A program made the position numbers and the translations under genes. The notes beneath the pieces were generated by a model. That model was not told the DNA's origin. It was given only the letters and a program-made list of their open reading frames with translations, and did no database searches. A stretch of 38,172 nt of DNA from Chlorokybus atmophyticus (Eukaryota; Plantae; Mesostigma and Chlorokybus algae). The stretch is from the NCBI GenBank assembly GCA_009103225.1, contig RHPI01000029.1:1-38172 (forward strand). Direction: 5' to 3'. Numbering within the stretch: position 1 is the stretch's first letter; every line of letters begins with the position of its first letter. Shown here piece by piece: positions 14,159 through 33,650 of the stretch.

Positions 14159-15109
14159 GTGGCGCTGCAAGTCCTCATATTTTACGCGGTCACCGGGTGT
14201 GATTACACCAGCTACACAAGCGGCATTACCAAATTGTTCTACTAGCAACATGCCATGGGGAGGCAGCCAGAGTTCATATCGCCCAGTGGGCAACTCACTC
14301 GAGACAAAATGGTGCCCATGTTGCTGCTCTTGATTGGGTGCGCCTGCTTTCACAAACACAAATCATCCTTGAGTCCCACCACATCTGCATCAGCTCTGTT
14401 CTGCGACCTGAACGGTGCGCGCGCATGCAAGGATGACACGCCAGTGATGGAGGCATAGCTCGCCCTCATTAGGAGCAGTGCCTGGCCACACACGTGGGTC
14501 AACCTTGAGGACATGGCGTCTACTCAAGCGCTCACTTACCATTGCCAACGTAGCTTACGTTGGCAATGGTACGCCTGTGGGTTGTCGACATGTGGCTTCA
14601 GTGTTGCAGATCAGAAATGCAGCTGCCCAACCTTGCAGACAGCGGTTTTGACGTGGTAGACGGCGTTGCTCACGCCATCATTGACACCACTGAGAACATG
14701 GTCGCTGCCAAGAGCCGCACCAACCAGCTGCTGCACGAATGCAGCTGCAAGAAGAATCAGTGCACCACCAAGATATGCAAATGCTGCAAGGAAGGCCAGC
14801 GCTGTTCCAGCAGGTGCTCATGCATAGGATGCACCAATTCAGAGGGTGGTCAGCCCACTCAAACACAACATTATGGTGCAGCAGACGGGCGCAGATGCAC
14901 ACAACAATCAGGCAGACGACCCTAGGTATGACTTACCAGCCAGCTCTGAACCTGACGACATCGATGACGATGCCGACTGTAGTAACTCGGAGGATGATCT
15001 GGCGGATGCATGCTCTGACAAGGAAGGTGATGAGGCGAACATTATGGACGACAACAACATGGCTGATTGCTTGGACATAATCGAAGACTTGACTGTTCCT
15101 GAGGAGTAA
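14159..15109 (+). pseudogene. PIN/XPG-like (GCD helix-turn-helix) + C-terminal CXC (tesmin-like) protein relic; 5'-truncated
   Basis: LIFYAVTGCDYTS; ALTYHCQRS; MWLQC..LPNLADSGFDVVDG; CSCKKNQCTTKICKCCKEGQRCSSRCSCIGCTN; acidic tail. In-frame TAG at 14243 and 14456, plus frameshifts. Confidence 0.7.
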
Positions 15110-17180: not shown

Positions 17181-19233
17181 ATGAGCAGGCCCACCCCTTT
17201 CTCGCCAATAGAAGAAGGGAACCTCAACAGCTGGAGCCCGGCCTCCAATCTTACCTACGAGCGCGCAAGTGAAGGGAGCTACTACCGTAGCAGCAGAGGC
17301 TCACGCCCCGTCTCCGGCTTCACCTCCTCTCACTCCACTCCTCGACAACGAGCATCTCCACCACCGTCGGACAGTGACGACGAAGAGATGGAGCCTTTCA
17401 GCTCAACCAACTCCCTACGCTTCTCCGGACGCCCTGGCACCACCTCACTTGACGAGTTCATCATCAAGTTCCACTCCAAGATGCGGCAGCAAGCCCTCAA
17501 GGGCAAGGACTGGACAGATGAGGTATCGTTTCATGTGTCCGCCCAATACCTTGATCACGAAGCGCATGATGTGTGGAAGTCGCTGTGTTGCACAGGATTG
17601 ATGGCTATGGCGAGTTGGCCAGCACAATAGCCTCCACGTCACTGCATAGCCCATTGGTTACTGTCCCTGTAGCAGCGACCCCGCCAGCCTCAGTCACGGG
17701 TCTCACTCTAGCTGCAGCCATGGAAAAGGCAGAGAATGAAGAAGTTGAGGTGGTAGTGGCCTCATTGACTCCTGCAGAGATCGAAAGCAAGAAGGCCGAG
17801 CGCCCGATCACATACTCAACCGCACCGCTGCCATCATCAAGGAGCAACAAGAGGAGCAGCAAGCTGCAGCGTTGGAGATGGGTACGCCCCGGCTACCAAC
17901 ACCGAACTCGCGTGCTCCAGCGGGAGGCAGTGTTTTCACCCTCTGCTCAGTGGCATTGCGTGCACCCGCGCTTACGGTGGGCGCGGCCATGTCGGACTCC
18001 CCGTTGAAGGACCTCTACGCCGCACTCCGGCGCACCTTCTCACCTCAAACCCAACAGCAAGGTGGAGGAGTTGAGGCGTTTTCGGCGGAAGGCCAACAAG
18101 GACCCTCTCCGACTGTATTCAAGGTTGGAAGGGTTGCTTAAAGACACTGACTACAAGATCGTCAGTGAGGAGGCGGCAGCAGTGGTGTATGTGGCCGAGT
18201 TGGATCCCACCCTGAGTCAACGCGCCTGACGCTGAACTACAGCAGGCCCCTCGGCTACACCCTCAAGGATGCTTTCGAGACGGCACAAGCCATCCATAAG
18301 CGCGCAGTGTATGAGAAAGCCGTGCAGGACACCAACCGCAGTGCTTCACGGCCTATGGCAGGCACAAGTGCAGAGCCTCTTTGGGGAGACCGCAGCCGAG
18401 AGCCGCAAGGCATCCACAACAAGGATAAACGGTCAGCTCATGCTGCCCTTGTGGCTCCAGTGCTGTGCCACCGGTGTGGTCGACATGGCCACTACTTAAA
18501 GGAGTGCACCGAAGATTACGGCAACCTTGTGTGCGACTACTGCCACAAGACGGGACACTTGGAGACAGTATGCTGGCTCAAGTTCCCTGAGCTGCGGCCC
18601 TCTATTGGTTACAACAACGGCAACAACGCTGTTGGCTACCGCAACAACAACAACAACAACAACAACAACAGTAACGGGGGCTACAATAACAGCAACCACG
18701 CTGGCGGCTACAACAATAGCAACAACGCTGGTGGTCGCAACAACGGCAACAACGCTGGTGGCCACAACCCCAACAACAACAACAACGCTGGGGCCCGCAA
18801 GAAAGAAGCTGGCTACAGAGGGAAAAACCGCCCTCCACAGCACAAAGGACCTGAGGGACGCCCTCGCGCTGGAGCTGCTGCTGTAAAGGCACCAACCAAT
18901 CCACCAGCTATTAACAAAGTGGCAGCCCTGATGGTGCGCGTGGCACAGCTGGAGGAGAACAAGGAGCAGGACTATCAAGCCTGCTATGCTGCTAGGTGGG
19001 CACTGATGGCACCAGAACGGGATAGGGACACTCCCACGCCGTCACGCGTACAACCATCAAGACGTGCGCGTAGGGAAGCTGGCTCGTCGTCAACAGCGGC
19101 ATCGTCGGACGCCACAAATGGTGCTCGGCAGCCACAACCACTGCTGGGACGACGCCGTCGACGACACCGTCGACGTCCACACCAACCACGACAGCAGGTG
19201 CCAGCACTCTTGGCACCACGCTGTCCCCGGTGA
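17181..19233 (+). pseudogene. gag: Ty3/Gypsy-type Gag with two CCHC zinc knuckles, frameshifted
   Basis: RFSGRPGTTSLDEFIIKF..WTDEVSF..YLDHEAHDVW. KVEELRRFRR..LRLYSRLEGLL lies in an alternate frame at about 18060-18230. Knuckles CHRCGRHGHYLKEC and CDYCHKTGHLETVC. Confidence 0.85.
18611..18787 (+). repeat. (AAC)n-rich coding microsatellite (Asn/Gly-rich linker after the knuckles)
   Basis: (AAC)9 at 18643-18669 plus interrupted AAC runs. Confidence 0.85.
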
Positions 19234-19576
19234 TGGAAAGCACCCACGCCGCAACAACCATGGGCGTTGGGTTCGTGGGTGGTGAATCCACCACTCCTGC
19301 CTCCATTGGCGCGACCACAGCGGTCACAACTGCTGCCACCCTCACGGCCGCCACCTCAGTAACGACGACTGCTGCCAGTGCCACCACCATCGCCTCCAAG
19401 AGTGCTGCCGCACCCACTGCACCACTTCCTGAGATTCGAACGGCACCGCCACCAGCACTTGACGTCACACAGCAGGTGCCACGCGGACCACAAGCAGAAC
19501 GCGCCTGGGCATCGGTCTTACGCAACGTGGAGCCCACCACCATTGCGTACGGACCAGGGGGCAACGCACCACGCGC

Positions 19577-21285
19577 GTGGCACGCGATGATCGCATCTTA
19601 CCCCTACCACCTCCAGAGTACCACACGCTGCTGGAACCCACACAACAGCAGCTGGAGGATGAAGTCCTCGCCGGCACTGCACCAGAGATGAGGGATCGTC
19701 TTTTTGGGGTCACCTACCGGCGACCTGCAGTACTGGAGCTGGCCATTCAGTTGTTCTTGGCATCACACGCACGATTACAGGGCGCACCCAGTCAATCGCG
19801 GCAACCCATGCCCGCTCAACAGATCGACTTCGAGCCCTCGCCACTGGACCCACTCGGACTCCAGCGCCACAAAGTACAAGACCTCGTGGTCACCATGTCA
19901 GACATCGCACTGGGCGCTGATCCCGCTCTTCAGGGGCTCACTCCAGGCAGTCGTCAAGAGCGTTTCTCTGCCCGCGAACAGGCCCATCGTTATCAGGTGG
20001 ACCAAGCTGCCCAAGTGGACGCGCGCCGACAGGCGTACGAAGCAGCACACGCCGTTATCGTACCACCCGTAGCGCCGGCAAATGTTGCCAGCGCCTCCAC
20101 GGCGCTAACCACGACGTACTCTACGGCAGACGCCATCGAACAGCCAAGGCAAGCAACTGTTGCAGATAAAGCGAGGGCGTTGGCGCAAGAATTGAGGGGG
20201 GTAATCGCCCCGCTGCTGCCTCCTTTGGTCGAAGACATGCCTGAGGATCAACGCGATGCAGGGCGAGGGTACGTCACCCCGCAAGGGGACACCACACAAC
20301 GAGGAGGAGCTGGTATGGTGGGGGAGCAACAACTCCGTACCGCACTCATCCAGCAAGCAGTCATGTTGCACAGGCCTGAGGGCAACACATTAAGTGATGA
20401 TGGGGATGCAAGAGGGCAGCGCCGCTCGAGCCCGTCTCGTGACATGGCTCGTTGCCAATCACCCTGCTGTCCCCCTGTTTGCCTTTGGCAACCGAGATCA
20501 TGGTTGGGGGCATTCGTTCGCTCGCTGCGACAAGCCTACGACGAAGCTGCCACCACAGCCCCGGACACGCTGGAGGGAGTGCAAGAGGCAATGCTGCGGC
20601 TGCCAGAGGTGGAAGCCGCACGCCAACGGCGGCGCATCGCCATTGCTCATGAGCTGCACGCACAGCAGACTTTCAGCGCACCCTACACGCGCGCGCCATG
20701 ACCGTGCTCGATGTGGGAGTGATACAAGGAAGGTGGGATGCCTACATGGCAGGGATCTTGCGAGTCCCCACCATCACTCACGACATGCGGCGACAGCTAC
20801 TACGCGCCGTATACCTACAGCCCATGCCTCAATATCATCATTGGACCGACACGGACACCGAGCCCACGGCCATGTGGGAAGGAACCTTGGTCAGATAAGC
20901 GGCTCATTCTGTTCGATGGACGTACGCCGCGGAGCAAGCTGAACGTGAGGCAGGCCCACAAACAACGGGTCCGCCGGGGTTTCCTCCACAACCATTGGGT
21001 ACACCCGCGGGCATGATTCCATCTTCGCAGAGGCGGCATCCACCTGCGCCGCCACCACAACCGGCGCCGGAACCTCCAGCACCGAGGCCACCCCGTGTCT
21101 ACCAACCACCACGACAAGGTTGCTTCGGCAGAGGGAGAGGGCAAGGAGGGGGTTCTCCGAACCCAGCAGGCAGAGGAGCTCTGGCTGCTATGCGCTCAGA
21201 ACCCCCAGCTGAGAGAACTGAGGTAAAGATGCAGACAGCTCGTATGAAGAGGCTGCGCATCGACGCCAATGCTGCCATGGTGGCG
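19577..21285 (+). pseudogene. Unknown coding region upstream of the protease; the 20397-21285 part is conserved in copy B (27557-28440)
   Basis: DAYMAGILRVPTITHDMRRQLLRAVYLQPMPQ (copy A) vs DAYMAGIIRVLTITHDIRARLLRAVYLQPMPQ (copy B). Both continue to KRLRI(D/H)ANAAM. Confidence 0.6.
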
Positions 21286-22486
21286 TTGAGTGGGTGCCCC
21301 AGAATGGAGCAAACTTGTCGGTAGCTGGAGGCCACGTGCGGACGCTTGTCGTCCTCTGAATGCGCATTTTTGATGACGTACCCCAGGGGTCTGAAGATCT
21401 GGTGGTGTTGAATGAGGTGGATGATTCTCATCATCTCCCAGAACAGCCCGCAGCGAGGGTTTTCGAGGCCTTGCCCCTTGCCTGCCCTGGAGTGCCCCTA
21501 GCATTCCCACCCAGCTATTAATGAATTGACGTTGCTGAGGGACAGTAGGTGATCTTCGACCATCCTGGAGGTGTGAAGCTTGGAGGCTATACGCAGAAGC
21601 ATGTGGACGTGGACATGAAGATGGCCATGGTGTGCGCAAGGTTGCTGCATTGACAAGGGTGGTTGAAGATGGAGTTGTAAGATACCACAAGGTCATGAGC
21701 AACAAGGAGGCACAAGTAGGTTGCGATTGCGGAGCCCGTATGAGCTGCAAGTGGTGGAAAGCAAGTTGACTATAGGAGTCATAGGCTGATACCAAAGGCG
21801 GAGGCACTGTCAACAAGGACAGATGCAGCGGGTGCATGAAGGCAACATGTATGTACAGCAAGGAGCAAGGTTGGTGGTCAACCATGAGGTTCGAGTTGCT
21901 GTGGAAGTGAATGACTTCAAGGTCATCCATGAGAAGCATGGAGGCGTGAGGAAAAAAGGTGAAGGCTTGCGTGAGAGCAAGCGGTGTGCGTGAGTAATGG
22001 AGGAGCTGATGTTGAAGGACAAGCTGCCCGCGTGGGAGTGTTGAAGGTATTACATGGGTGATGCTTGTATCCGGTCAGCTTGCCCTTCATACAGGAGTCG
22101 AGGGTCGAAGGTACCATGAAGAAGCGCGTGGACTCCAGACTTAGCAAGACGGTCGAGTCAAGACGGACTCCGGACCAGGCTGCTTGGTTGAGTCTTGGGA
22201 GAAATTGCGTAGCTTTGTGGATACGTAAGCTTAGCAGACGTGGCTTAGCTTGTTGGAAAGCTCTAGTTGTGAGCTAGACAGCGTAGCTTACAGAACAGCA
22301 ATCGGCTGAGTATAGCGCACGCGGTGCTATGTCAACAGAGAGGGGTAGTTGACATGAATACCTTTCGTGCAGTTGGCATAAGTGGTGCTTGAGGACTGTC
22401 TGCGCGTGTGGGTCTGGGTCGCAGTAATAGTATTTGACAACCTTTACACATGTGTTGAGGATCGCAGCAAGACCACTGCCAATGCC
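21286..22486 (-). repeat. Inverted duplication of DNMT3-like coding sequence, split by a copia remnant
   Basis: 21286-21557 is the reverse complement of about 23513-23781, and 22338-22486 of about 23312-23460 (nearly identical). The insert is flanked by a near-duplicate GCCAATGC..CCATGGTGGC (21264-21284 / 22478-22500). Confidence 0.9.
21558..22337 (+). mobile_element. 3' remnant of a copia-type LTR element (internal tail + 3' LTR 22039-22337)
   Basis: CAAGCTGCCCGCGTGGGAG then TGTTG...CAACA. The internal tail and LTR share blocks with element 30610-33238 (CGGAGCCCGT, CAAGTGGTGGA, CGGTCAGCTTGCCCT, AAAGCTCT). Confidence 0.8.
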
Positions 22487-23050
22487 AATCCCATGGTGGC
22501 CAACCAAGGCAAGCACGTTACCATCAACGGCCTGGCACCCAAGCGAGTAATGTTGGACACCGGAGCATTGCCTGTCATCATCGGGCGCTTCCTCGCGCGG
22601 TCCCTCGGCATAACCAGCTCCGACTTGGTGCCTTGCCCGTACGTGTTGGACACTGCCACAGGTAGCCGAGATAAGGTGATGGGAGTCATCAGGGAGGCCT
22701 TTTGCAACCGGTTGACAGGGCTGGACCCAACCCACACAACCGAGATCGTCCAGCAATGTGTGGTCACCAATGCCGGCTCCTTCAACTTTCTGCTTGGGCA
22801 GGACTTCAACTTCCTTGTGGGCATGGGCCTCGACTGCTGGACAGAGCGAGCGTGGTTTTGGCCACATTGGGATGAGGATGACGGAGAGGTGCAGGGTTTC
22901 CTGCCTCTCGAGTTGGTCTCGCGCACGCGCGCCCAACGCAGAGTGGCTGCCGTGGCCACACGCAGCCACGCCCGCACACGGGAGGCTGCAACGGCCACAT
23001 ACGACGGCGCTCGGACGCAAGTCGCTGCTGGTGCCACGGTCCCATGTTGA
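22487..23050 (+). pseudogene. Retropepsin-like aspartic protease, copy A
   Basis: KRVMLDTGALPVIIG catalytic DTG motif; FNFLLGQDF (retropepsin LLG.DF). Frameshifted relative to the DNMT that follows. Confidence 0.85.
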
Positions 23051-23101
23051 ACCGTCGACTCCTCTCCCACCCCGTACAACAAGGAGGAAGAGGATGCCAC
23101 C

Positions 23102-23956
23102 GTGGAAGTAACATTACAAGACCCAGCTAAACGACGCTGGCGCGCACAGGTGGACGCACACATCTTGCTCAGCCATCCACTGATCACCACGCGTTTCCTC
23201 AACTACCGAAGCCACAACAAGGTGCAGGACCACCATATGGTGGCCACCGGAGTGGTGGAGTTCCACACCTTTCGCAGGCAACAGGGCATCACGGTGTTGG
23301 AGCTGTTTGGAGGCATTGGCAGTGGTCTTGCTGCGGTCCTCAACACAGGTGTAAAGGTTGTCAAATACTATTACTACGACCCAGACCCACACGCGCAGGC
23401 AGTGCTCAAGCACCACTTACGCCAACTGCACGAAAGGTATTCACGTCAACTACCCCTCTCGGCGTTGCAAGGCAGCCTCAAAGCATTGCCACAGGACATC
23501 CGGCTGATCACTGAAGATCACCTACTGTCCCTCGGCAACGTCGACTTAATAGCTGGGTGGGAATGCCAGGGGCACTCCAGGGCAGGCAAGGGGCAAGGCC
23601 TCGAAAACCCTCGCTGCGGGCTGTTCTGGGAGCTGATGAGAATCATCCACCTCATTCAACACCACCAGATCTTCAGACCCCTGGGGTACGTCATCGAAAA
23701 TGTGCATTCAGAGGATGACAAGCGTCCGCACGTGGCCTCCAGCTACCGACAAGTTTGCTCCATTCTGGGGAACCCACTCAAGGTGAACGCGGCACGACAT
23801 GGCTCCCGCGCACATCGTGTACGTGCCAAGTGGACAAACTTGGCCACCGTGGAAGAACTCATGACCGCAGAATACACGCGCAGCACTCGGCCGCGCAACC
23901 TGCTGGTCGATGACATCCTCGACTCCCCTCGACCCGACACCCCCCTCTGCTCTTGA
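23102..23956 (+). pseudogene. DNMT3-like C5 cytosine methyltransferase (motifs I-VIII), C-terminally truncated
   Basis: Motif I VLELFGGIGSG; IV GWECQGHS; GLENPRCGLFWELMRII; VI YVIENV; VIII HRVRAKWTNL. Diverges from copy B right after ILD, so the TRD and motifs IX-X are absent. Confidence 0.9.
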
Positions 23957-24701
23957 CACGCACGCCGCAACTCCCCAACGGGGCGCCGCATCGCCCCAAG
24001 TTGCTGGACTTGTTTTGCGGAGGGGGAGGCGCCAGCATGGGCTTGTACCGCGCCGGCTTTGACGTCACTGGTGTGGATATACATGCCCAGCCAGAATACC
24101 CCTTCCACTTAATCCATGCCGATGCGCTGACAGTCGACCTGGTTGAGTACGATGTGATCTGGGCAAGTCCCCCCTGCCAGGCCTTTGCGCGCTGTATACC
24201 CGACACACAACGGTGCAGCACTCTCACAAATGGCAGCACAACACTTTGCTACATGACATCAGACAGAAGCTACACGAGTCCAGCAAGCATTACATCTTGG
24301 AAATTATCCCCGACGCGTCCATACACATGCGTGCCGACATGGTCCTGTGCGGCACCATGTTCTCGCTCTCTAAATTTCGACACAGAGTGTTCGAGTCCAG
24401 CCCGCTTCTGTCTGTTGACAAGGTTTGTGACCATGCATTACACAGTTTGGGTGCGTTGTCTGGACACCGCACTGCACATACCAACGCGCAGCAGCCCCCA
24501 CAGCACCAAATGTATCCGATCTATGGGCAAGCGGCTTCACGCGGGACTGTAGCAGGGTGGCAGAAAGCGATGGGCATCAATTGGATCCATGCAGAGTCTA
24601 CTCTGGTAGAGTGCATACCCCCGGCGTACTCTGAGTACATAGGCCGCCAGATGTTGAAGGCGCTAGGGTACACTCTGCACGATTCATCTCTGTCGTGGTG
24701 A
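23953..24701 (+). pseudogene. Second C5 cytosine methyltransferase of small phage/actinobacterial type; one frameshift near 24213
   Basis: [27 protein letters not shown] (I-II), [17 protein letters not shown] (IV). After the frameshift: YILEII (ENV-like VI), [14 protein letters not shown] (VIII), AMGINW, ECIPPAYSEYIG (X). No own ATG; no introns. Confidence 0.9.
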
Positions 24702-25505
24702 TCCACTGCATTGTGGTTCATGCACTTATTGGTCTTGCACACACATTGATAGCGCTGCAGTTGTTGAAAGTCACAATCTCGCTATATGACCTAGTGCGAT
24801 GAAGCACGAGTCGACCAACGCAGTTTGCATCTTCAACAGATACAATCTGCAACAGCACACACCATCACCCATTCACAATCTGTACACGTCCCCACATGCA
24901 CTGCAACCTCCTGAATTGTGGCATTTTTCAGTTCTCACCATGCACAAGATTATTTACAACACAACCCAGGCCACTGATACAATTTCAGCACAATGGCAAG
25001 TGGTCCAAGAGCCAGTGCACGTGCTGTAACTGCACCACTCTGTGTAATTTGCATTGCGCATTACAGCATGCATGGTTCAAGCTCTGCAAAAGCATTGAAT
25101 TGCACACGCAAGTGTTCAAACTGCGCATGACCAATATACACAGGCAATGGTTCAAGGAGCCAGCTTACATGCTGTAACTGCACATGCATAGCGCATCCCA
25201 GTATGCACTTGCAAGCTCTGCACAAGTTCTGCATTGCACACACCGCTGCCAAGAGCCAGGTGCACAGGGTCATAACTTCAAGCCTCGCAGTGGGACCTGC
25301 TGGTAGCGTGGAGCGCCGAGGTCAACACGACCGGTTCATTTGGGCTCAATCACACGACCCACTTGAAACAAGGCGGACTGCAATGCCGTCGGCATGGGCA
25401 ACGCTGCCTGGGCAAGCGGCGGCGCCGGCGGCGCCGGCGGTCCATTTGCAGCGCTCACATCAGACGCACCATCGATAACAGGGACCGCAAGACTGCAATC
25501 AAAAA

Positions 25506-27556
25506 CACACGGATTGACGTTCGGGGACCATGCATGGTCCTTCCACGGACCCCGCGGGCCATACATGGTCCGTCCCCGCGGACCACGAGTGTCTGGTCCG
25601 CGAGGGACGGACCGTCCATGGTCCTTTTGGGGCCCCAACACCTGGCGCGCAGTTGCGCACCACATATGGTCCGTGCCGCACCTTGTATGGTGCGGCACGG
25701 ACCAGTACTCTACGCTGGTTCCTGGATGCGGACCAGGAGTGGGCCCGCGGCTCAGCGGCCCGGCAGCCGCGCACCGTACATGGTCCGTGCCGCACCATGT
25801 ATGGGGCGGCATGGACCAGCAATGTTGCTGGTTGGCGGCCCTGCAGGGCGCGCTACACGTGTACCATGACTGTAGTATCGTTATTGCATGAACGAGTACA
25901 TACGTACAATGTGTGTATCATCATTTAATAAATGACAGGCCGCACTGACTGTCGCCGCTTACCATAAAGTGGACAGTCGCAAATGGTCGGCGGCTGTCAA
26001 TGTATATTGACAGCCGGCTGTCCACGTACACTACGTACACTTTAACTTGACAGCCGCCGACCAGTTGCGGCTGTCCACTTGTGGCCTATATATGTATATA
26101 TGGATATGTGTATACATATAAATATATGTGTATATATACACATATATATATATGTATACAAGCATATGTATATATATGTTGATAAATATACGTGTGTGCA
26201 TGTAGGAATACGCTTAAGGTATACAAGCAAAAATTGTTGACGAATTGCGCAATTTGCAGCCGTGCAATTACTTCATATCTATTATTTCACGTACATACAT
26301 TGTTGTAAGTATATTGATGCGCGTACACATGTGCATCAAACCTTTCATATGTAAAATTATATACATCTCAAATTATGTATAAAAATATAACTGTACAAAG
26401 TGTTATGATTGCTGTACAATTACATAGTCTAAAAAATTCATTATATCAAATTTACATCCATGCGTTGCGCGTGTTAATTACATTATATATAGTTTGTTGG
26501 TTATTACATTACCATAATGTTGACAACCGTTAACATCATACCATGAATACATATGTTGATGATGTTCGCATGTTGCATTGCTAGGCGTAGTTGATGGTAT
26601 GTTTGATTATAATGATTTGTACGAAACGAAAGCGCAAGCAATGTCAGATGTTATGACTTGTAGCCTTACTTGTATAACCTCATAAATGGCCTATAAAAGC
26701 CTCATGCGACCACAGAATCATCGACAGCCCGATAAGGTACACTGGCTGCATTGACAGTCGCAATTTGGCTACTATCGCTAAGCATTGTCACAATGACAGC
26801 CCCTAACAAGTCTACAGATTGTACTGGCGTATTGACAACCGCCGAGTTCGCGGCTACCGGTATGTAGTTTGCCACCGTCCATGTAACTGGTACAGCCTAT
26901 GAATGCTACAGTTGCATGGGCTCAGCCTATGGGCCTATCAAAGTGACAATCTCCGACTGTCCATCGGCAATTACTGCCGCCGGCCGACAGTCGCCAAGCG
27001 GCGCATGCAACACTATATGATATAGGTTGCCATACAACCCTACCGGTACGTGCACTTGTAGCTTAGTGGTTAGGGCGTCGTCTTTGATACGCTAAAGGTA
27101 CTGGGTTCGAATCCGGCCGATGCGTGTGTTAGACTAATCATTCCACTAACGCCGCAGAGCTGGCCGCGGCCTCGTGCGCCGCAGGTTGGGCGTAGCCGGT
27201 GCCGCCGGCAAAGATGTCTCAACTTTTACTGCATTTGCACTCATCTACATTGTTCCATAATACAATTCGGTCCATGGTCCGCTCCGGACCAGTTATGATT
27301 GAAATATTGTAATGATATGATTTTGTCCCTGGTCTGATGGCCGGACCATACCTGGTCCTGACGCAACAGTAATTGGCCGGACCTTCAATGGTCCGTACCA
27401 AGGGACAATGGTACCATTCATGTGAAATTCGGACCATGCATGGTCCGACTGTCCATGAAAGCCGGACCATACATGGTCCGTCAATTTCACTTAGCAGGGG
27501 AAAATCCCGGTCCTGCGTCACGGACCATTCATGGTCCTTGAACGTCAATCCGTGTG
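25506..27556. mobile_element. Non-autonomous CACTA-like element with 17-bp TIRs and GGACCA subterminal repeats
   Basis: CACACGGATTGACGTTC at 25506-25522 has an exact reverse complement at 27540-27556. Dense GGACCATG/CATGGTCC arrays at both ends; perfect 16-bp hairpin 25667-25704; AT-rich core. No matching TSD (aaa vs atg). Confidence 0.75.
27052..27123 (+). pseudogene. tRNA-like sequence (tRNA pseudogene or SINE head) with Pol III A and B boxes
   Basis: TAGCTTAGTGG (A box) and GGTTCGAATCC (B box) at tRNA spacing. Acceptor and anticodon stems pair poorly, so it is not called a functional tRNA. Confidence 0.62.
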
Positions 27557-28426
27557 ATGGGGATGCGAGAAGGTGGCAATGCAACTTGAGCAAGACTATT
27601 GACTTAGCTAGTCACCAATCACCCCGCAATCCCTCTGTTCGCATTCGGCACCAGATTGTTATGGTTGGACGCCTTCCTTTGCTCGATACGGCAAGCCTAT
27701 CACGAGGTTGCCTCGGCAGCCACTGACACCTAAAAAGAAGCGCAAGAGGCCATACTTAGGTTGCCAGGGGTGGAAGCAGCGTGATAACGCCGACGCATCG
27801 CAGCTGCTCATGAGCAGCATGTTCAACAGCCAGAGATTCAGCTCTCTGTGCGGGCACGAGCAACGACGGTGCTAGAAGTGGGGCTGGTCAATGGCTGATG
27901 GGATGCCTACATGGCGGGAATCATAAGGGTTCTTACCATCACTCACGACATAAGAGCGAGGCTCCTGCGCGCAGTGTATCTCCAGCCCATGCCTCAGACT
28001 CACCGCTGGAGTGACGTGGTCAACAATCCAACAGCAACATGGGAAGGTACACTGGTCAGGGAGGCAGCTCATGCTGTACGCTGGACTTATGTGGAAGAAC
28101 GGGCTGCACGGGAGACGGGCCTACAAACACCCGATCCTCCAGGGTTTCCCCAACAGCCACTAGCTACGCCGCCAGGTATGACCCCGGCCACACAAAGGCG
28201 CAATCCCCCTGCGCCACAACCAGGACAACCACAGGCAGCACCGCCAGCACCCAGGCCACAGCGGGTATACCAACAGCCAAGACAAGGACGGTTCGGGCCA
28301 GGCCGCGGACAAGGAGGTTCTCAAGACCAAGCTGGTCGAGGGGCAATTGCCGCACTGCGCTCAACACCACTGGAGGAGACTGCAGCAGCAGTCACCCCAC
28401 GCACACGCTACTGATGATTCAAGCGG

Positions 28427-29041
28427 TTGCGCATCCACGCCAACGCAGCCATGATCGCCAACAAAGGCAAGCATATCACCATCAATGGACGAGCACCCAA
28501 GCGCGTGATGCTAGACTCTGGAGCCCAGCCTGTCATCATCGGACGTTGCCTCGCACGCAACCTTGGCATCACTAACGCTGAGCTGATGCCTTGCCCATAC
28601 GTGCTTGACACAGCAACCGACAGCCGTGACAAGGTGATTGGCATCACCAAGCAGGCCCTCTGCATTCGTCTGTTATGGTTGGACCCTTCCCACAGCATCG
28701 AGGTCATACAGAAGTGTGTGGTCACCGACGCTGGATCCTTCGACCTGTTGCTGGGACAGGACTTCAACTTCCCTGTTGGCATGGGGCTTGACTGCTGGAC
28801 AGAGAAGGCATGGTTTCGTCCCCATTGGGATGAGGAGTATGGAGAGGTTCAAGGATATCTGCCTCTTGAACTGGTGGCCCGCACTCGCTCTCACCAAAGG
28901 TCAGCTGCAGCAGCCACCTATAAGGCGGTTTCGACAACCACTGACAGATCAGCTGCGGTGGTCACCCACACCCTTGATCAGGACTCTCCTGTCCCATACA
29001 ACGAGTCCCAAGAGGATGCCATTGAAAAAGTTGCTCACTAG
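28427..29041 (+). pseudogene. Retropepsin-like aspartic protease, copy B
   Basis: KRVMLDSGAQPVIIG; FDLLLGQDF. Strongly similar to copy A. Ends at a premature TAG where copy A has Gln. Confidence 0.87.
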
Positions 29042-29054
29042 GAACCATCTGAAC

Positions 29055-29570
29055 CAGGGTCACACGGTACGCGCGTATTTTGCAAAAAGTACGCGTTTGC
29101 ACGCGTACAAAGCCGCCGTGTACCGTGTACGTCGTATGTACGCAGTCTGTACGCAGCGCCGGTCAAAAGAGCTAATTCCGCGAGGTCACCCATCCCAACA
29201 TTATCCACACTGTTGACACACCAATCTGGCGACGCGACAGCGTCGCGCTATCATTCAAAAGCGCCGAGTTTATACCTTTGCCAACATTATGCACACATGA
29301 TAATATATGTAAACATATATAGCTAACTAAAAGTGTAAGATGTATCAAGTAGTGGCGGCGGCGGTAGGTGTGCAGGAGAAGAGGGGTGTTAGTGGAACCC
29401 AGTAGTCGTCCAACCGATGTACATGCATGCAAGCACTCTCTCTACTTTGTTATGTAAAATGACATTAAGAAACATTGCGTACTGCTACATACTGGCATGA
29501 ACTAGTACACGTATATACACGTATAGCAATGCCCGCGTATTAAACGTGTATTGCGTACCGTGTGACCCTG
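29055..29570. mobile_element. hAT-type MITE (516 bp)
   Basis: Perfect 18-bp TIR CAGGGTCACACGGTACGC / GCGTACCGTGTGACCCTG; 8-bp TSD ATCTGAAC at 29047-29054 and 29571-29578; no coding capacity. Confidence 0.93.
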
Positions 29571-29578
29571 ATCTGAAC

Positions 29579-30609
29579 GCCACTGGCGCGCATAGGTGGT
29601 CGCACATCTACTACTGACCAGACCACGGCTCACTGCACGGTTCCCTCTTTACAAGGACCAAGCTGCAGTCCAGGAGCAACACCAGGTGGCCACTGGAGTA
29701 GTGGAGTTTCACGTGTTCCGGCGACAACAAGGCATCACCGTGTTGGAATCATTTGGAGGTACAGGTAGTAGCCTCGCCGCTGTTCTCAACACCGGCGCGA
29801 CGGTCACTAAATACTTCTACTGTGACCCTGATCCACACGCACAGATTGCCCTGAGCCAGCACTTGCGCCACCTACACCAACACTACCCGCAGCAGCTGCC
29901 ACTATCGGCACTGCAAGGCAGTCTGAAAGCACTGCCACATGACATCCGTTTAATCACTGCGGATCACCTTTTGGCAATGGGCAACATCAACCTGATAGCA
30001 GAATGGATCAAGGACACTCCAGAGCAGGCCAAGGACTCGCTGATCCGCGCGCGCGATTGTCCTGGGAACTGATGCGTGTCATCATAAACCTGCAGAGCAA
30101 TCAGCTGTCCAGGCCTCTGGGATACATCATCAAAAATGTGCGTTCCGAGGACGATAAGCGCCATCACGTGGCCAACAGCTTTCAACATGTGTGTTCTTTA
30201 CTGGGACTCCCTGTAAAAATCAACGCAGCGCGCCATGGATCCCGTGCTCATCGCGTCCGCGCCAAGTGGACCAACCTAGCTACAATCGAAGATTTCTTTG
30301 CAGCTAAATATCTGCACAGCAGCTGTCCACGCAATCTCACCATCGAGGCCATCCTGGACCCTGGGCGCACAGCACAACCGGTCACGCGACACGATCACCA
30401 GCAATCCTATCAATGCAACCAGCCTGGTCAACCACGTTGTGCGCTCCCCACTTTGATGCCTTACCCAGGATCATACGCTTTCCGCAACCGAGGCGAAGGC
30501 ATGGTGTTGGATGCCAACACAGGCCGACTACAGGAACCCAACGCGCGTGAGCGCGAACGCGCCATGGGATTCTCCAGGCAGTATCACAGGTTCCACGCTG
30601 ACCGACAGC
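29579..30609 (+). pseudogene. DNMT3-like methyltransferase copy B, motifs I-IX
   Basis: VLESFGGTGSS (I). A small deletion removes the catalytic E-C of motif IV and shifts the frame. Then LSWELMRVI, HRVRAKWTNL, a TRD and EPNARERERAMGF (IX). Confidence 0.88.
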
Positions 30610-33238
30610 TGTTGAGGATATTCCTACATCTAGGTCAATAGGTCAGTCGGTCAGCTTGCCCTCTACATAAGAATAGCCGCCAGAAGGTTCCAGGAGACTC
30701 AAGTCAAGAGGTCTAGGCGAGAGAAGGTTCCAGGCGCGTCGGCGAGTCCGGAGTCTGGAGACTTCCAGGCGCTGTAGTAGAATGATTGTATCCCGATGGT
30801 TACTTGACTATTTGGCGTGTGCCATAGCTTATTGGAAAGCTCTTGAAGTTATCTACGTGGCACAACCTAGAAGGCAGGCTAAGGTTGAGTGTGCTAGATG
30901 CAGTAGCTTCTAGAGTAGAAGCATGTGTAGCTGGCGGGTATAAAACCCGTGGACCCAATGGCAATAGATGGTCTTGCATAGTCTCCTGGCGCTGGTGTTG
31001 TGGCGTGCATTTGTGCATGTGCATGCTTGTCATCGTCCATCTCAACAGGTTTTTGGCCCACACACGCTTGTGTAGCGTGTAGTGAGTTGATTCGTGTGAG
31101 TAGGTGTGGATGCTTTGTGAGTAGTAGGTTGCAAGGTCTGCAAGTAGCAGAGGGGCAACGAAGGTCACAAGCATGGACGGCATCAAGTACACGATCAACC
31201 CACTGGACGTTGACAACTACAACATTTGGAGCGTGAAGATGGAGCTGCTACTGGCCCATAAAGAGTTGTGGAAGTATGTAGACCCGAAGGAGACTGTTCC
31301 CGTCGGTGAGGCGAGTGTCTGGGCGTCTCAAGGGAGAAAGGCTGAGCGCTGATTGGCTTGCACATGGTGGACCATCACCTGGTGCTGGTGAGGGAGTGCA
31401 AAGATGCAAGGGAGCTTTGGACAAAGCTTGAGAACCACTTCAAGGCGCGGAACATGGCAAGGAGACTGCAGCTGAGGCAGGAGCTCAACTCGTTGCGCAA
31501 AGAGAGCGGAGAGGCCATTATCAAGTTCATGGCGCGCGCGAAGGCGTTGCGGAGGGACTTGCTCGGTGTTGGCCACGAACTCAAGGAAGTGGAGGTAGTT
31601 TGGGCTGTGCTCTCAGGTTTGCCCAAAGAGTATAGGGTTGTTGTCACTATCTTGGAGTCGTCAACGGAGGACTTGACGCTGGACGGGGTGACACCACGGC
31701 TTCTTCAAGAGGAGCAGCGCTTGAGAAAGGAGGATGAAGTAGAGAACGGAGCTAAACCCGGAGGCGTGGCGTTCACAACTTCATCGAGGTATGCACATGA
31801 GAAGAAGGGCGCTCGAGGCAGCAATGTGGAGTGTTGGCATTGCGGGGAGCGTGGTCATGTGAGGAGCAAGTGTCCCAAGTGGAAGAGGGGGAGGGCTGAT
31901 GGTGAGGAGCGGGTGTGTACGTTCCACGCATCTGATGAAGGAGCGGAGTATCCTGGGTGGGTGCTGGATTCCGGAGCGAGCAAGCATCTCACAAGCGACA
32001 GAAGCAAGCTCATTAACCTCACTCCTTTGACTGAGCCAGTCACGGGGGACTTTGGGAACAAGAAGATGTTGAATGCTGTTGCAAAGGGAGAGGCCAACCT
32101 CAGGTGCAAGGTTGGTGGTGTAGTGAAGAAGGTTGTGCTTCGAGATGTACTTTATGTGCCAGGTGCATCTGCTAGTTTGTTCTCAGTACGTGTAGCCACG
32201 AGGGTTGGTGCTAGAGTTGTGTTTGATGCGGACAAGGCTAGGATAGTGCTTCGAGGCGTCACACATGTGGTAGGCATCAACAAGGGCGGATTGTACTACG
32301 TTGAGGAGGACAAGGCGCACAAGGATGTTGCAGCGACAAAGGTGGTTGACAAGGGAGCATTCAAGACACCACAAAGGCAAGGCAACAAGGAGGCACTGAA
32401 GATTGCTGTGAAGCGGACGAGCTCGGAGCCCGTGGGAGCTGCAAGGAGTTACAAGCAAGTGGTGGAGAGCAAGGTGGCTAAGGAAGAGCCAAGGGCTATC
32501 ACTAGGGCTGGAGTTGCAGTCTCAAGAAAGGAGGAGCAGCTGGTGCAAGGCGGCAACGAGCACGTGCAGCAAAAGAGCAAAGGGTTGAAGGTCAACCAGG
32601 AGGCTCAAGTTGCTGTGGAGAACAAGTTCTTCAAGGCTAACCGCTTTCAGGCGCTCATGGGAAGCATGGTGGAAGAAGTGGAGCAAGAAGAGAAGGTGAA
32701 AGGCATCTTGGCAATCGCGCACAAGAAGAAGAGCAAGGCTAGCATGAGAGCTAGTGGTGCATGAGCTACAAAGGTGAAGGTGTGAAGGTCAAGCTGCTCG
32801 CGTGTGAGTGTTGAGGATATTCCTACATCCAAGTCAGTCGGTCAGCTTGCCCTCTACATAGGAATAGCCGCCAGAAGGTTCCAGGCGACTCAAGTCAAGA
32901 GGTCTAGGCGCGAGAGGGTTCCAGGCGCATCGGCGAGTCCGGAGTCTGTAGACTTCCAGGCGCTGTAGTAGAATAATTGTATCTCGGTGGTTACTTGACT
33001 ATTTGACCTGTGCCATAGCTTGTTGGCAAGCTCTAGAAGTTAGCTACATAGCGCAACTTAGAGCGCAGCACTTAGTTGAGTGTGCTAGATGCAGTAGCTT
33101 CTAGAGTAGAAGCATGTGTAGCTGGCGGGTATAAAACCCGTGGACCCAATGGCAATAGATGGTCTTGCATAGTCTCCTGACGCTCGTGTTGTGGCGTGCA
33201 CTTGTGCATGTGCGTGCTTGTTATCGTCCATCTCAACA
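30610..33238 (+). mobile_element. Complete non-autonomous Ty1/copia-type LTR element (gag + protease only)
   Basis: 5' LTR 30610-31047 and 3' LTR 32809-33238, both TGTTG...CAACA. 5-bp TSD ACAGC (30605-30609, 33239-33243). PBS GGTTTTTGGCCCA at 31048-31060 resembles the copia half-tRNA-iMet PBS GGTTATGGGCCCA. Confidence 0.95.
31173..32764 (+). CDS. gag: Copia-type Gag-protease with one frameshift near 31340; no integrase core, RT or RNase H
   Basis: LDVDNYNIWSVKMELLL, ARELWTKLENHF, VLSGLPKEY (copia gag); CWHCGERGHVRSKC knuckle; WVLDSGASKHL protease; LRDVLYVPGASASLFSV, GGLYYV; then a Lys/Glu-rich non-pol tail. Confidence 0.88.
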
Positions 33239-33243
33239 ACAGC

Positions 33244-33650
33244 AATGTCAGTTGTTGGGACGCGCAATGGACCAGAACAGCATAGCGTGGTTATTGGAGA
33301 TGTGCTTTGCTCTCCAAGACCGCCATGTGTCCTTCGAGGAGCTCGAACACCTAGCGGGGGGGTGGGTTGATCGCGTTCGAAAGACCAAAGCGGCACGCAC
33401 CGCCCTTGAAATCGCTTATATGGAGGAGCAGGCAGCAGTCATTGTGGAGGACATTCCAGTAGTCGCCAACGCTACCTCTTGGTCCCATGCCATTGGACCA
33501 CTGACTATAGGCCAGACGCGGGAACAACTTGAGGCTCTTCTCAACAAGTGGAGGAGTCAGTTCAGTTTCAGCGTAAAGGAACTGGCGTCTGCTCAGTTTA
33601 CAAGATGGACATCGAGCTGGTGGACACCGAACCGATTTTCCGACAACACC
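33244..33650 (+). pseudogene. DNMT motif X and N-terminal start of Ty3/Gypsy reverse transcriptase (copy B continuation)
   Basis: CQLLGRAMDQNSIAWLL (motif X-like), then REQLEALLNKWRSQFSFSVKE / GVCSVYKMDIELVDTEPIFRQ, which resembles the gypsy pre-RT L..F.D.F...G....I.L....P..Q segment. Confidence 0.72.

Follow-up and report, generated by a model that had tools for sequence, protein, structure and literature searches.

We analysed a 38,172-nucleotide window of the Chlorokybus atmophyticus genome (contig RHPI01000029.1), in which a DNMT3-like methyltransferase domain of a retrotransposon is followed at once by a second cytosine methyltransferase. The second methylase is probably a dead, single-copy, intronless relic of a small C5 methyltransferase of giant-virus type (an 'orphan DNMT'), which would have been acquired independently of the retrotransposon and would touch the retrotransposon copy only through the loss of that copy's 3′ part; we give this reading a probability of roughly 0.7. 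A retrotransposon with two methylases would have been a new kind of element. What remains is modest, a further relic of an orphan DNMT of viral origin, here in a streptophyte alga.

The two methylases lie in a nest of decayed mobile elements that occupies about 18.3–33.7 kb of the window. Comparison of the window with itself reveals two diverged copies (A and B) of one retrotransposon, hereafter Gypsy-DNMT, with a nucleotide identity of 69–76% across the matching blocks. Between the two copies lies an element with terminal inverted repeats (TIRs). The features of the region are as follows.

18307–23923, forward strand: Gypsy-DNMT copy A, 3′-truncated and rearranged inside, with gag-like ORFs, a protease and a DNMT3-like half-domain.
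20398–21198 (gag-like), 22491–22930 (protease) and 23127–23923 (DNMT): blocks of copy A that match copy B.
27555–28363 (gag-like), 28449–28888 (protease) and 29573–30359 (DNMT): their counterparts in copy B.
22382–23050, forward strand: aspartyl protease ORF of retroviral type in copy A, matching PF13650 (Asp_protease_2) at 4.6e-8.
23102–23956, forward strand: DNMT3-like C5-methyltransferase, N-terminal part only, in frame 2, with family homology up to 23923.
23924–25505, forward strand: single-copy segment from the truncated retroelement to the TIR element, with the second methylase followed by about 0.8 kb of non-coding sequence.
23959–24201, forward strand: N-terminal part of the second methylase, in frame 1 (open from 23914), with motif I and the motif IV sequence SPPCQ.
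24204–24701, forward strand: C-terminal part of the second methylase, in frame 3, with the stop codon at 24699–24701.
25506–27556, strand undefined: non-autonomous TIR element of 2,051 bp, multi-copy, between the single-copy segment and copy B.
27557–33650, forward strand: Gypsy-DNMT copy B, truncated on its 5′ side where it meets the TIR element; a copia-like piece is nested in it at 30610–33238.

The first methylase belongs to the retrotransposon. In copy A, the DNMT3-type domain sits in the pol frame 3′ of the protease, as the original prediction had it. Specifically, ORF 23102–23956 matches PF00145 at 1e-8 (above the cut-off) and phrog_116/363 at about 1e-17, and its best solved relatives in the PDB are DNMT3A, DNMT3C and DNMT3B (3e-7). 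Gypsy/Ty3 retrotransposons that encode a DNMT3-type methyltransferase were published in 2018 (de Mendoza et al. 2018, PMC5890265). As in those elements, the first methylase follows an aspartyl protease and has DNMT3A, DNMT3B and DNMT3C as its best solved relatives, and the family is present here in high copy. Unlike those elements, copy A breaks off inside the DNMT, has internal rearrangements and contains no reverse transcriptase (RT), RNase H or integrase. Gypsy-DNMT retrotransposons are a known kind of element, to which copy A adds nothing new.

Copy B served as the reference for the intact continuation of the DNMT. Segment 23127–23923 of copy A shows 69% nucleotide likeness to segment 29573–30359 of copy B, and this likeness extends up to 23923, which is the third position of the Asp codon in 'ILD', exactly where the departure from the paralogue had been predicted. 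Beyond 23923, the copies resemble each other no more than shuffled sequences do (the local score is 14, and shuffles average 15.8), and homology to copy B past the break was rejected on this ground. Copy B completes the domain, including the C-terminal motifs (ERERAMGF) that copy A lacks; the frame of copy A runs through 11 unrelated codons and then meets a stop. Because the break falls after ILD and the C-terminal motifs are absent, the first methylase is a truncated half-domain, and copy A ends inside the DNMT at 23923 instead of completing the domain and going on to RT, RNase H and integrase.

The junction at 23923 is not a feature of the retroelement family in the reads examined. Two public runs (X1 and X2), which may be the strain that was assembled, were used as assembled contigs over 22800–25600 at a likeness of at least 90%, a level at which older, diverged copies of the junction would escape. 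Word depth over 22800–23927 is 48–258 in X1 and 29–65 in X2, while over 23928–25430 it is 0.3–9 and 0–3.8, respectively; the Gypsy-DNMT part is in high copy, at roughly 10–60 times the depth of what follows, and the second methylase and its 0.8-kb tail have the depth of single-copy sequence. The high-depth contigs of the family leave the window sequence at 23923 and continue, as in copy B, with sequence that encodes PGRTAQPV (residues read by eye). The junction was not found in several copies among the contigs of at least 90% likeness from the two runs. A single unitig spans 23923, and it reaches just 12 nt to the left of it, which is below our criterion for a bridge and confirms the junction weakly.

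The reading frames across the junction do not form one coding unit. Three coding stretches lie in three frames, with a change from frame 2 to frame 1 within 23914–23956 and a change from frame 1 to frame 3 at 24201–24204. The end of the second methylase is two frame changes away from the DNMT frame. Furthermore, no RT, RNase H, integrase or terminal repeat was found 3′ of the second methylase, where the sequence passes into unique non-coding DNA (24702–25505) and then into the TIR element. The ORFs of 23924–25505 gave no Pfam match, and the single-copy segment contains a decayed duplication of about 110 bp (24995–25107 and 25143–25241). An exhaustive, profile-free search with the C-terminal piece of the second methylase returned 1,497 relatives, and there is no polyprotein-sized protein among the best 150 of these, all of which are at most 488 aa long. 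A family of two-methylase retrotransposons is not supported. Rather, the evidence points to a chance juxtaposition, the adjacency being a single-copy, out-of-frame junction in the already rearranged copy A.

The second methylase is recognizable from both of its pieces. Frame 1, from 23914, encodes LDLFCGGGG (motif I) and SPPCQ (motif IV), so that both family motifs are present. Motif I (FxGxG) binds SAM, and motif IV (PCQ) provides the catalytic cysteine. The frame 1 piece matches phrog_363 at 7e-21 and PF00145 at 19.2 bits, just below the 22-bit cut-off, and is 60–81% identical to thousands of methylases of about 200–340 aa, which are mostly metagenomic and include a few named actinobacterial proteins, e.g. 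from Lentzea. Frame 3 (24204–24701) encodes LCGTMF, RHRVFE (motif VIII, RxR), AMGINW and IPPAY / IPPAYSEYIGRQ, all aligned with the relatives, and is collinear with the same proteins (8e-18 against P0013 and 2.7e-32 against P0103). Taken alone, the C-terminal piece (24213–24701) has no match in Pfam, PHROGs, NCBIfam or the PDB sequences; it was identified only through pairwise and exhaustive searches.

A tblastn search with P0103 (340 aa) places residues 6–86 at 23959–24201 (60% identity), residues 88–174 at 24204–24461 and residues 262–333 at 24474–24677. The second methylase thus reads as one full-length, intronless small methylase with a single internal frame change at 24201–24204. It had been called complete, and it is so in the sense of being collinear with residues 6–333 of the 340-aa P0103, with no ATG and no introns, as predicted; it is not intact, the frame change and an altered motif VI being the exceptions. 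The methyl-CpG-binding domain (MBD) insert of P0103 (about 87 aa; residues 175–261) has no counterpart in the window, where the distance from 24461 to 24474 amounts to 4 codons.

The second methylase shows several marks of decay. It contains no ATG that could serve as a start codon. Its motif VI reads EII, against ENV in 11 of the 11 aligned relatives, the Glu being kept and the Asn-Val lost. In addition, its terminal branch in the tree is 0.91, about three times the median of 0.33. Unitigs from the two public runs cover 23912–24119 and 24016–24292 with no differences from the window, and these intervals include both frame-change sites. An origin of the frame breaks in assembly errors, for which a run of six C residues at 23939–23946 had made a candidate, was rejected, as the unitigs of both runs match without gaps. 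The missing ATG, the read-confirmed frameshift, the EII motif VI and the long branch together mark the second methylase, as far as its sequence can tell, as a pseudogene. Neither methylase remnant is likely to make an active enzyme: the DNMT3-like part because it is without the target-recognition region and the C-terminal motifs, and the viral-type part because it has no start codon, carries a frameshift and has lost the NV of motif VI.

The nearest relatives of the second methylase sit on giant-virus contigs. The best relative, P0103, is found at an E value of 2.7e-32 with 51% identity in the search and 52% over 227 columns of the tree. In P0103 and a set of proteins of 270–351 aa, the MBD follows motif VIII and precedes the C-terminal block; four of them (P0103, P0269, P0270 and P0273) have an MBD match that clears the Pfam threshold. 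The contig of P0121 bears topoisomerase II, the small subunit of ribonucleotide reductase (RNR) and a U-box gene; P0127 lies on a 245-kb contig with an intein-containing Rpb1 and a B-family polymerase; the contexts of P0270 and P0279 include mRNA triphosphatase, TBP, kinases, topoisomerase II and YqaJ; and P0124 adjoins an RNA ligase/PNKP gene. No Tudor-bearing protein is present among the 120 best relatives from the P0103 search (187–595 aa).

We placed the second methylase in a tree of 52 rows, for which, as in the alignment, its two pieces, used separately in the searches, were joined by an X at the break. It is sister to a 13-row clade with the MBD insert (93/86), and the pair is sister to the group of P0127 (92/87). 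A placement with the prokaryote-like half of the tree is not rejected by the AU test (delta lnL 9, p 0.128). The signatures HxHKW, C[DN]H..SLG, QM[FY]P[VI]YG and the tail ALGYT, as well as a two-residue insert after motif VI, are common to the window methylase and the viral clade and are missing from the rows of prokaryote-like sequences. Over its N-terminal 65 residues, the window methylase has its closest match in the prokaryote-like half of the tree (81% to P0001). Compared with the small C5 methyltransferases of phages and bacteria (PHROG 363; Lentzea), the second methylase is alike in family and size, with 65–81% identity over these 65 residues, whereas the C-terminal two-thirds is about 30% identical to the phage and bacterial enzymes and about 45–53% identical to the giant-virus clade.

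The nearest clade of the second methylase is, by these comparisons, most likely giant-viral. The original prediction of an actinophage or actinobacterial type stands insofar as the gene is foreign, belongs to the family of small C5 methyltransferases of phage and prokaryote type and is unrelated to DNMT1, DNMT2 and DNMT3; it is refined for the nearest relatives, which occur in the context of giant viruses (nucleocytoplasmic large DNA viruses, NCLDV), with the AU value as given above. The MBD insert that is missing from the window copy may reflect ancestral absence or later loss, both being possible because the window methylase is sister to the MBD clade.

The MBD-insert clade includes P0103 (L001:2028-3050), P0270 (L007:8803-9858), P0269, P0271–P0276 and P0121. 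The MBD in these proteins lies inside the catalytic domain, at the position of the target-recognition region, and among PDB sequences the insert resembles MBD2 (6e-6). For P0279, this region is divided over two adjoining genes, a methylase and an MBD protein. The accessible parts of the literature yielded no description of giant-virus C5 methylases with an MBD insert. Such a protein would unite reader and writer in a single domain, and a maintenance-like preference could result. This giant-virus clade is a more interesting by-product than the locus itself. In three metagenomic proteins of about 450 aa among the relatives (P0122, P0126 and P0278), two small C5 methyltransferase domains are naturally fused in tandem. 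Tandem methylases of this family of small enzymes do occur, but in compact and apparently prokaryotic or phage genes.

As for the order of events, we infer that the methylase gene came first, the retroelement insertion second and the deletion last. A virus-derived orphan methylase gene, itself viral or transposon-borne, would have arrived in the region; Gypsy-DNMT copies and other elements would then have inserted around it; and the 3′ part of copy A, along with any sequence upstream of the methylase, would have been lost through deletions or rearrangements. Between the break and the first downstream residue that can be aligned to full-length viral relatives there are only about 35 nt. The retention of almost exactly one whole coding sequence would be rare from a random deletion, and a selected fusion or a capture could explain it.

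One alternative, which we consider unlikely, is that the methylase descends from the Tudor-fused methylase gene that DNA transposons (Plavaka, Academ) carry as cargo, as an old and diverged fragment severed from its Tudor part by the retroelement. The break just upstream of the methylase domain is the place where the Tudor part would stand, and a DNA-transposon-like TIR element lies 0.8 kb downstream. However, the outer end of that TIR element faces the methylase, which puts the methylase outside it. The segment is at single-copy depth at a likeness of at least 90%, so it is no recent member of a many-copy family; the methylase has no introns; and its N-terminus aligns with the very beginning of viral proteins that stand alone. 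When all ORFs at 24.5–25.9 kb and the larger ORFs at 9.5–19.7 kb and 29.6–38 kb were scanned with Pfam, neither a Tudor domain nor a transposase nor a viral hallmark was found. The same scans gave only a copia gag, a weak CCHC match (within 18307–19233) and an exon with a Tesmin/TSO1-type CXC (TCR) domain.

A one-off capture is kept as a rival because the break is so close to the first aligned residue. All of the sequence after 'ILD' in a Gypsy-DNMT copy would have been exchanged for the transcript or gene of a viral-type methylase, during reverse transcription or by illegitimate recombination, and the resulting non-autonomous chimera would never have multiplied and would have decayed. This account is rather doubtful. 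It has in its favour, besides the position of the junction, that the methylase is intronless and full length and that the two open frames overlap in 23914–23956 with an offset of one base; but the frames do not join, and the offset is real in the reads. The junction is single-copy, the methylase is followed not by a terminal repeat or poly-A but by 0.8 kb of unique DNA and the TIR element, half a DNMT3 domain joined to a whole second methylase has no evident function, and copy A contains other, unrelated rearrangements.

More improbable again is a version in which the junction is a frozen snapshot of a Gypsy-DNMT element swapping the C-terminus of its DNMT3 domain for a captured giant-virus methyltransferase, as a chimera that was at first in frame and later decayed. 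If true, it would show that retroelements can exchange methylation cargo with viruses. The original prediction had offered a horizontally acquired methyltransferase in place of the DNMT C-terminus as one of its two explanations; that explanation is unsupported, the junction being single-copy and out of frame, with no retroelement 3′ end behind it. The other explanation, in which full-length Gypsy-DNMT elements end their pol with a second methylase of viral type, brought next to the DNMT in copy A by an internal deletion, has the adjacency itself in its favour and nothing else, and it is hardly credible when the segment is at single-copy depth and the family at roughly 10–60 times that depth, no relative among the best 150 of 1,497 exceeds 488 aa and no retroelement end follows. 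The original prediction had itself set against these explanations a unique adjacency and copies in non-retroelement contexts, and what was found is largely of that sort: the adjacency is single-copy at a likeness of at least 90%, and the relatives occur in viral contexts.

The preferred reading, an independently acquired relic of a giant-virus-type methylase, has precedents. Virus-derived orphan DNMTs and endogenous giant-virus elements are known in eukaryotic genomes (Sarre et al. 2024, PMC11244446; MBE 2025, PMC12344493). The second methylase resembles the orphan DNMTs in several ways: it is a small C5 methyltransferase with no companion domain, is foreign to DNMT1, DNMT3 and DNMT5, and has its nearest relatives on giant-virus contigs. 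It also appears to be unexpressed or dead, like the Acanthamoeba example (PMC12344493). Unlike the endogenous giant-virus elements, it is only a 1.6-kb single-copy relic that no other viral gene adjoins, and for that reason a giant-virus insertion is a candidate origin only. A literature search returned nothing on Chlorokybus with a DNMT or retrotransposon, or with a giant virus.

The element at 25506–27556 has terminal inverted repeats of 35 nt that start with CACACGG and are 91% complementary. Arrays of the palindrome GGACCATNNATGGTCC lie below both ends (8 matches, against 0 expected), and the core is AT-rich, with a TA-rich microsatellite and many GACAGYC words. A degenerate tRNA-like piece at 27052–27124 scores 22.7 bits with the Rfam tRNA model, below the cut-off, and ARAGORN finds no tRNA in the element. 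The increase in depth at about 25500 indicates that the element is multi-copy, and its right end abuts copy B exactly at the start of the likeness to copy A. The segment 25431–25890 had been considered as a 3′ repeat of copy A and was rejected, as it is the left end of the TIR element.

Copy A also carries inverted pieces of its own DNMT between gag and protease, at 21286–21557 and 22338–22486, which in the self-comparison are 95% identical to 23513–23781 and 23312–23460, respectively. They are a local inverted duplication, younger than the split between copies A and B. Between the two pieces, the segment 21634–21905 resembles the copia-type gag that is nested in copy B. In copy B itself, direct repeats at 30610–31047 and 32809–33238 (91% identical) flank ORF 31358–32764, which encodes a copia-type gag with a zinc knuckle and a Pol beta-barrel domain; 30610–33238 is a short, LTR-bounded copia derivative nested within Gypsy-DNMT copy B. 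Finally, ORF 14560–14925, the source of the CXC (TCR) match (1.4e-5, above the cut-off), is possibly a host-gene exon between a Helentron and the Gypsy copies.
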